Of a stretch of 64,000 bases of DNA, positions 6,574 to 6,706 are shown in pieces. The stretch is from Scyliorhinus canicula (taxonomy: Eukaryota): positions 20,018,526-20,082,525 of the forward strand of contig NC_052169.1 of NCBI RefSeq assembly GCF_902713615.1. The letters are read 5' to 3'. Within the stretch, counting starts at the first letter, position 1. The number at the start of each line of letters is the position of its first letter. A model generated the notes under the pieces. It saw only the letters and a program-made list of their open reading frames with translations. It was not told the DNA's origin and did not search any database. Made by a program: the position numbers and the translations under genes.

Positions 6574-6706
6574 AATCGGAGGAGGTTGAATCATATTGAG
6601 GTTGACCAATCGCCTAACTGTTGCTGTTGCTTGTTCCATTCAACCTGTTTGCTGGAAGTGTTGTTCTGTGAACCAGCCTTTGTTTTCTTGTACAAGATCA
6701 TCCAGT
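6574..6706 (-). CDS. TRIP4: TRIP4 coding exon 8 (RLDDLVQE...LVNLNMIQPPPI); contains an in-frame TGA as given
   Basis: aaacag| acceptor, |gtaagt donor, 133 nt with phases 2 to 0 exactly bridging exons 7 and 9; both ends resemble ASC-1; TGA at 6640-6642 in the literal frame. Confidence 0.8.

Follow-up and report, generated by a model that had tools for sequence, protein, structure and literature searches.

Does the TRIP4 (ASC-1) gene, as it stands in the 64,000-nt stretch of DNA analysed here (hereafter, the window), carry a genuine stop codon in its eighth exon, or does that stop belong to the assembly? A sequence-only reading of the window had noticed an in-frame TGA within a 133-nt exon and had offered three accounts of it: (a) two homopolymer assembly errors; (b) a genuine null allele without the ASCH domain; and (c) a recoded TGA, or rescue by an internal splice acceptor downstream of the stop. 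It took the first of these as the conservative choice. Our comparison of the locus with public DNA and transcriptome data indicates that the in-frame TGA is almost certainly an assembly artefact.

Translation of the minus strand confirmed that the TGA lies in frame in exon 8 as assembled. Read on that strand, the exon is preceded by ..ttgaaacag (AG acceptor) and followed by gtaagt (GTAAGT donor); one base at its entry completes a codon, and it exits in phase 0. More specifically, exon 7 ends ..TAT TAC AGC AG, followed by gtttgt, at 12300, and the first A of exon 8 completes AGA (Arg), after which the reading continues as LDD, while exon 9, preceded by ..ttttctgcag, starts at 2140 with YVELTGAG and leads into the ASCH region (..CLSMHQPWASLLVSGIK). 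The canonical splice sites and right phases that had been claimed for exon 8 were borne out, and because the phases match those of exons 7 and 9, the outer frame of exon 8 is correct at both ends. In this frame the assembled exon translates as LDDLVQENKGWFTEQHFQQTG*MEQATATVRRLVNLNMIQPPPI, the stop-bearing frame starting (R)LDDLVQ and ending LVNLNMIQPPPI, and a second frame runs without a stop across the middle of the exon (..TKAGSQNNTSSKQVEWNKQQQQLGD..). In other vertebrates, exon 8 reads R/K-L/F-D-E/D ... L-x-E/D/V-L-V-N-P-N ..., then WVD.

The exons of the gene were located with tblastn searches of the window in which four full-length orthologues served as queries; together with exon 8, these searches place nine TRIP4 exons within it, all on the minus strand. 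The other eight exons align to the orthologues unbroken, as the sequence-only reading had stated, and exon 1 carries an ATG, reading METLLRWCQEE... Exon 8 was the sole exon that these searches missed, because it is short, variable and frame-broken; for the same reasons, homology alone could not settle its frame. The search of representative proteins returned no close cartilaginous-fish orthologue, the top identity being 73%. The TRI4_N domain (Pfam PF23135, E 5e-18) was found in the exon 2 reading, the C2HC5 zinc finger (zf-C2HC5, Pfam PF06221, E 1.3e-09, 38.3 bits against a cut-off of 25.8) in that of exon 4, and the TRIP4 third domain (TRIP4_3rd, Pfam PF23134, E 8.4e-27) in exon 7, which also matches PDB 8alz_A, Activating signal cointegrator 1, at E 1.3e-28. 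The first ASCH exon, a 65-aa piece taken alone, is 52-76% identical to orthologues and has no Pfam match, and further ASCH exons lie beyond the window. The exon order is the same as in vertebrate TRIP4/ASC-1 (e.g., the human chain, PDB 8alz_A), with which the gene also shares its N-terminal domain, zinc finger and third domain; exon 9 would encode the start of the ASCH region, and the last TRIP4 exons, encoding most of ASCH, fall outside the window. In a representative TRIP4 protein from another species (P0026, 863 aa), exons 4-6 are present twice, a duplication that is probably due to mis-assembly or mis-prediction in that species.

Table 1. Positions of the TRIP4 exons, the apparent stop and the single-base differences between the assembly and the public runs (window coordinates).
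Feature	Position	Strand	Description or evidence
TRIP4 (ASC-1) exon 8	6706..6574	minus	133 nt; splice sites read from sequence; RNA contig borders agree
Apparent in-frame TGA	6642-6640	minus	Frame set by exons 7 and 9
TRIP4 exon 7	12515..12300	minus	Pfam TRIP4_3rd; sets entering frame of exon 8
TRIP4 exon 9	2140..1947	minus	Phase 0 start; start of ASCH region
TRIP4 exons besides exon 8	starts ~34420, 32200, 30911, 23252, 19386, 16885, 12517, 2140	minus	tblastn
Very probable assembly error 1	6683-6686		T4 run (AAAA on coding strand); T3 in X1, X4, X19, X28
Very probable assembly error 2	6609/6610		One T missing between A6609 and T6610; extra T behind 6609 in X1, X4, X19, X28
Intron 7 indel	6754		+A in A6 run; X1 and X4
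Intron 7 indel	6829		+A in A3; X1 and X4
Intron 7 indel	6867		+C in C3; X1 and X4
Intron 7 indel	6885 (to 6886)		-1 in CC; X1 and X4

Several other features were seen in the window. A tandem array of a 37-nt unit (46.6 copies, 91% matches) occupies 62274-63999, extends to the window end and yields long spurious open reading frames on the plus strand. By look alone, open reading frames at 41231-41755 (plus), 54721-55182 (minus) and ~38275-38580 (minus) resemble the C-terminal part of a LINE reverse transcriptase, with a ..HLEYC.QFWSP.. motif. Two SINE-like repeat families, recognized from recurring peptide signatures in the list of open reading frames, occur more than 10 times each, with minus-strand examples at 6112-6377, 10497-10877, 14768-14962 and 17912-18262. 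Proline-rich, GC-rich low-complexity stretches at 34014-34338, 8738-8893 and 56619-57231 are open over long distances in several frames, and the first of these sits in intron 1, just downstream of TRIP4 exon 1.

To return to exon 8, contigs from four public runs were compared with the assembly over 6390-6990. Two of these are DNA runs, namely, X1 (sample S1, study P1, 2019), whose contig covers 6469-6990, and X4 (sample S2, study P2, 2024), whose contig covers 6393-6927; the depths of these DNA contigs are low, at 3.4 and 5.3. The other two are transcriptomes: X19, from organism A (the same species, 2015), provided a spliced contig of 2025 nt at a depth of 21.5, and X28, from organism C (a close relative, 2018), one of 2029 nt at a depth of 68.6. 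Contigs lose rare variants, so that a minor allele or minor isoform would escape notice in this comparison.

All four runs differ from the assembly at the same two places in exon 8 (Table 1), and at both sites their frame is open. The shortening of the T run from four to three letters, which the sequence-only reading had put forward as a repair, is present in each of them. Its second repair, a base added to the AA at 6608-6609, named the right spot but not the right letter: the runs add a T behind 6609 on the plus strand, i.e., an A on the coding strand, which there reads GAATTG rather than the GATTG of the assembly. The DNA contigs revealed four further single-base differences in intron 7, shared by X1 and X4, which makes six single-base indels within 277 nt (6609-6885), two in exon 8 and four in the intron. 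Over 6469-6990 (~520 nt), X1 departs from the assembly by these 6 indels and by 0 substitutions. X4 has three substitutions (6576 T>C, 6586 T>C and 6642 A>C), and its states at all 6 indel sites are the same as those of X1. X4 thus carries substitutions of its own and yet has the common indel states, so that at each of the sites it is the assembly that stands apart. Within 6393-6927, the three X4 substitutions are confined to the 133-nt exon, with none in ~400 nt of flanking intron; such a distribution is unusual for neutral variation, and chance may account for it.

These data bear directly on a further account, i.e., that a single nonsense substitution arose in an otherwise correct frame. 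As the frame is the same at both ends of the exon, one point change could in principle suffice to create the stop. However, no run loses the stop through a substitution and yet stays in the assembly frame, the A>C change of X4 at 6642 accompanies both indels, and all four runs show the two indels. This account is thereby refuted, and we give it practically no chance of being correct.

The public data were also searched with 31-mers. Over the 601-nt stretch 6390-6990, the best-matching DNA runs contained only about half of the sampled words. For exon 8, every one of 19 matching runs (mostly small transcriptome-like runs from many studies and under two organism labels) contained exactly 4 of 10 sampled words, and none contained half or more. 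Two indels ~75 nt apart leave 47 of the 103 possible 31-mers of the exon intact, an expected share that fits the 4 of 10. In these searches of the stretch and of the exon, words spanning the affected sites were found in no public run.

The structure of the mature transcript was read from the X19 and X28 contigs, which are placed on 6574-6709 only and both cover the whole of exon 8. Reverse-complemented, their loose end before 6574 corresponds to the opening 30 letters of exon 9, and that behind 6709 to the closing letters of exon 7; the letters cag at 6707-6709 fit both the end of the intron and the end of exon 7, which itself ends in CAG. X28 has one substitution in its exon 9 loose end, so that organism C, though very closely related, is distinct. 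In the mature transcript, exons 7, 8 and 9 are joined at exactly the predicted borders. Use of an alternative exon 8, or skipping of the exon, was considered and rejected, as in both RNA contigs the segment joined to exons 7 and 9 is exactly 6706..6574.

The same contigs address whether a real TGA might be bypassed, be it through recoding (selenocysteine or readthrough) or by way of the internal acceptor ttag, followed by GCGATTG, downstream of the stop. What speaks for such a bypass is the assembly sequence only. The transcript contigs of two studies, by contrast, cover 6706..6574 in full, joined to exons 7 and 9, and show no joint or loose end at the internal acceptor, so that this part of the third proposed account, for which junction reads had been suggested as a check, found nothing in its favor in X19 or X28. 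Moreover, the in-frame TGA is absent from both transcripts, as both indel differences are present and the triplet is out of frame. The two-indel correction also restores the ELVNxN motif, which recoding would not do. Recoding and use of the internal acceptor are therefore refuted for the major transcript, and the prospect that either explains the stop is negligible.

Once the two read-supported changes are made, exon 8 is still 133 nt long and is open in the outer frame, reading LDDLVQETKAGSQNNTSSKQVEWNKQQQQLGELVNLNMIQPPPI. In the corrected frame, the TGA at 6642-6640 is split between two codons, its T closing GTT (Val) and its GA opening GAA (Glu). The restored codons GAA TTG encode E-L, giving the peptide ..LGELVN.., so that the ..LGDLVN.. 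anticipated by the sequence-only reading, with Asp in place of Glu, is not what the reads encode. The corrected E-L matches the ..LRELVNPN.. of several fishes, and the exon regains the ..L[RG]ELVNxN.. motif seen in orthologues. Like the TRIP4 of other vertebrates, exon 8 here comprises a variable linker ending ..LxELVNxNxxQxxP..; unlike in other vertebrate TRIP4, the linker is Q/N/S-rich (..SQNNTSSKQVEWNKQQQQ..), and a Leu stands where vertebrate LVNPN usually has Pro. When the exon was aligned globally with six orthologous exon 8 segments from vertebrates, the score increased after correction for six out of six (e.g., 45 to 75 for P0011, and 28 to 55 for another), and local alignment scores for the variable middle segment were mixed. 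Judged from these alignments, homology would serve as supporting evidence only for the choice of frame, the middle of the exon appearing too poorly conserved for more. Read in the corrected frame, the substitutions of X4 are GTT>GTG and CAA>CAG, both synonymous, and ATT>GTT (Ile>Val), a pattern that is as expected for a constrained coding exon.

The distribution of the six indels is informative as to their origin. At five of these sites, a stretch of 2-6 identical bases already present (T4, A6, A3, C3 or CC) is longer or shorter by one; at the sixth, behind 6609, a single T becomes two. No indel was found in the covered 216 nt before 6609 or in the 105 nt after 6885, and the error density of the patch is ~2%. 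Consensus sequences from noisy long reads differ mainly by single-base indels, whereas natural haplotypes differ mainly by substitutions. At all six sites, the assembly thus departs from independent reads by clustered, mostly run-length indels, with 0 substitutions against X1. In being 1 nt long, clustered, mostly run-length and free of accompanying substitutions, these differences are like known homopolymer and single-base indel errors of long-read consensus, which introduce false stops and frameshifts into gene models. Relative to typical false-frameshift errors, they are peculiar in that the two in exon 8 compensate, keeping the exon length and the outer frame, and there is nothing different in kind.

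A remaining account is that the sequenced animal carries a private null or compound-frameshift haplotype of TRIP4, with all six indels in its germline. Two points can be cited for it: X1 and X4 may come from animals other than the assembled one, and the assembly sequence does contain the lesions. Against it, six 1-nt indels and 0 substitutions relative to X1 in ~520 nt are the opposite of natural variation. The lesions are private to the assembly when it is compared with three samples of the species and one relative (for the intron sites, with X1 and X4), the affected 31-mers occur in no public run, and at five of six sites what changes is the length of a base run already there. Loss of TRIP4 is severe in humans, which also argues against such an allele, though a heterozygote would be viable. 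This haplotype is accordingly very improbable, and it is the pattern, rather than that animal's own reads, that rules against it. Equally doubtful is its specific form, namely, that the animal is heterozygous for a null with compensating frameshifts, lacking the ASCH domain, on an indel-rich haplotype. The real null allele proposed as the second account is at odds with X1 and X4, two samples from two studies, neither of which has either lesion, and it is superfluous given an mRNA that lacks the in-frame TGA.

The account that we favor is thus the first one, two homopolymer assembly errors, which is supported by the open frame in two DNA samples and two transcriptomes. The assembly would have one base too many in the T4 run at 6683-6686 and one too few at 6609/6610, as a consequence of which the ~75 nt between them would be read in the wrong frame, and the TGA would appear. 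The gene model seems intact but for one stop because the two errors in the exon compensate. The six clustered indels would together represent noisy long-read consensus that had escaped polishing, and their clustering suggests a locally unpolished or gap-filled patch. Direct observation shows how the four runs differ from the assembly, where the exon is spliced and that its frame is open; that the cause is long-read consensus error, and not a private haplotype of the sequenced animal, is what we infer from this. In the species and its close relative, the real gene possesses an open exon 8 of 133 nt, spliced normally between exons 7 and 9, which encodes a poorly conserved linker and then the conserved L-x-ELVN-x-N motif.

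The significance of these results is limited to annotation quality. A gene model built on the assembly would truncate TRIP4 before the ASCH domain, or be flagged as a pseudogene or low-quality protein. The 6 errors in 277 nt are a warning that a lone stop or single-base frameshift met in this assembly is best taken for an error unless reads show otherwise. TRIP4 here is an ordinary, intact and expressed gene, and the TGA in its eighth exon is almost certainly not a biological feature.
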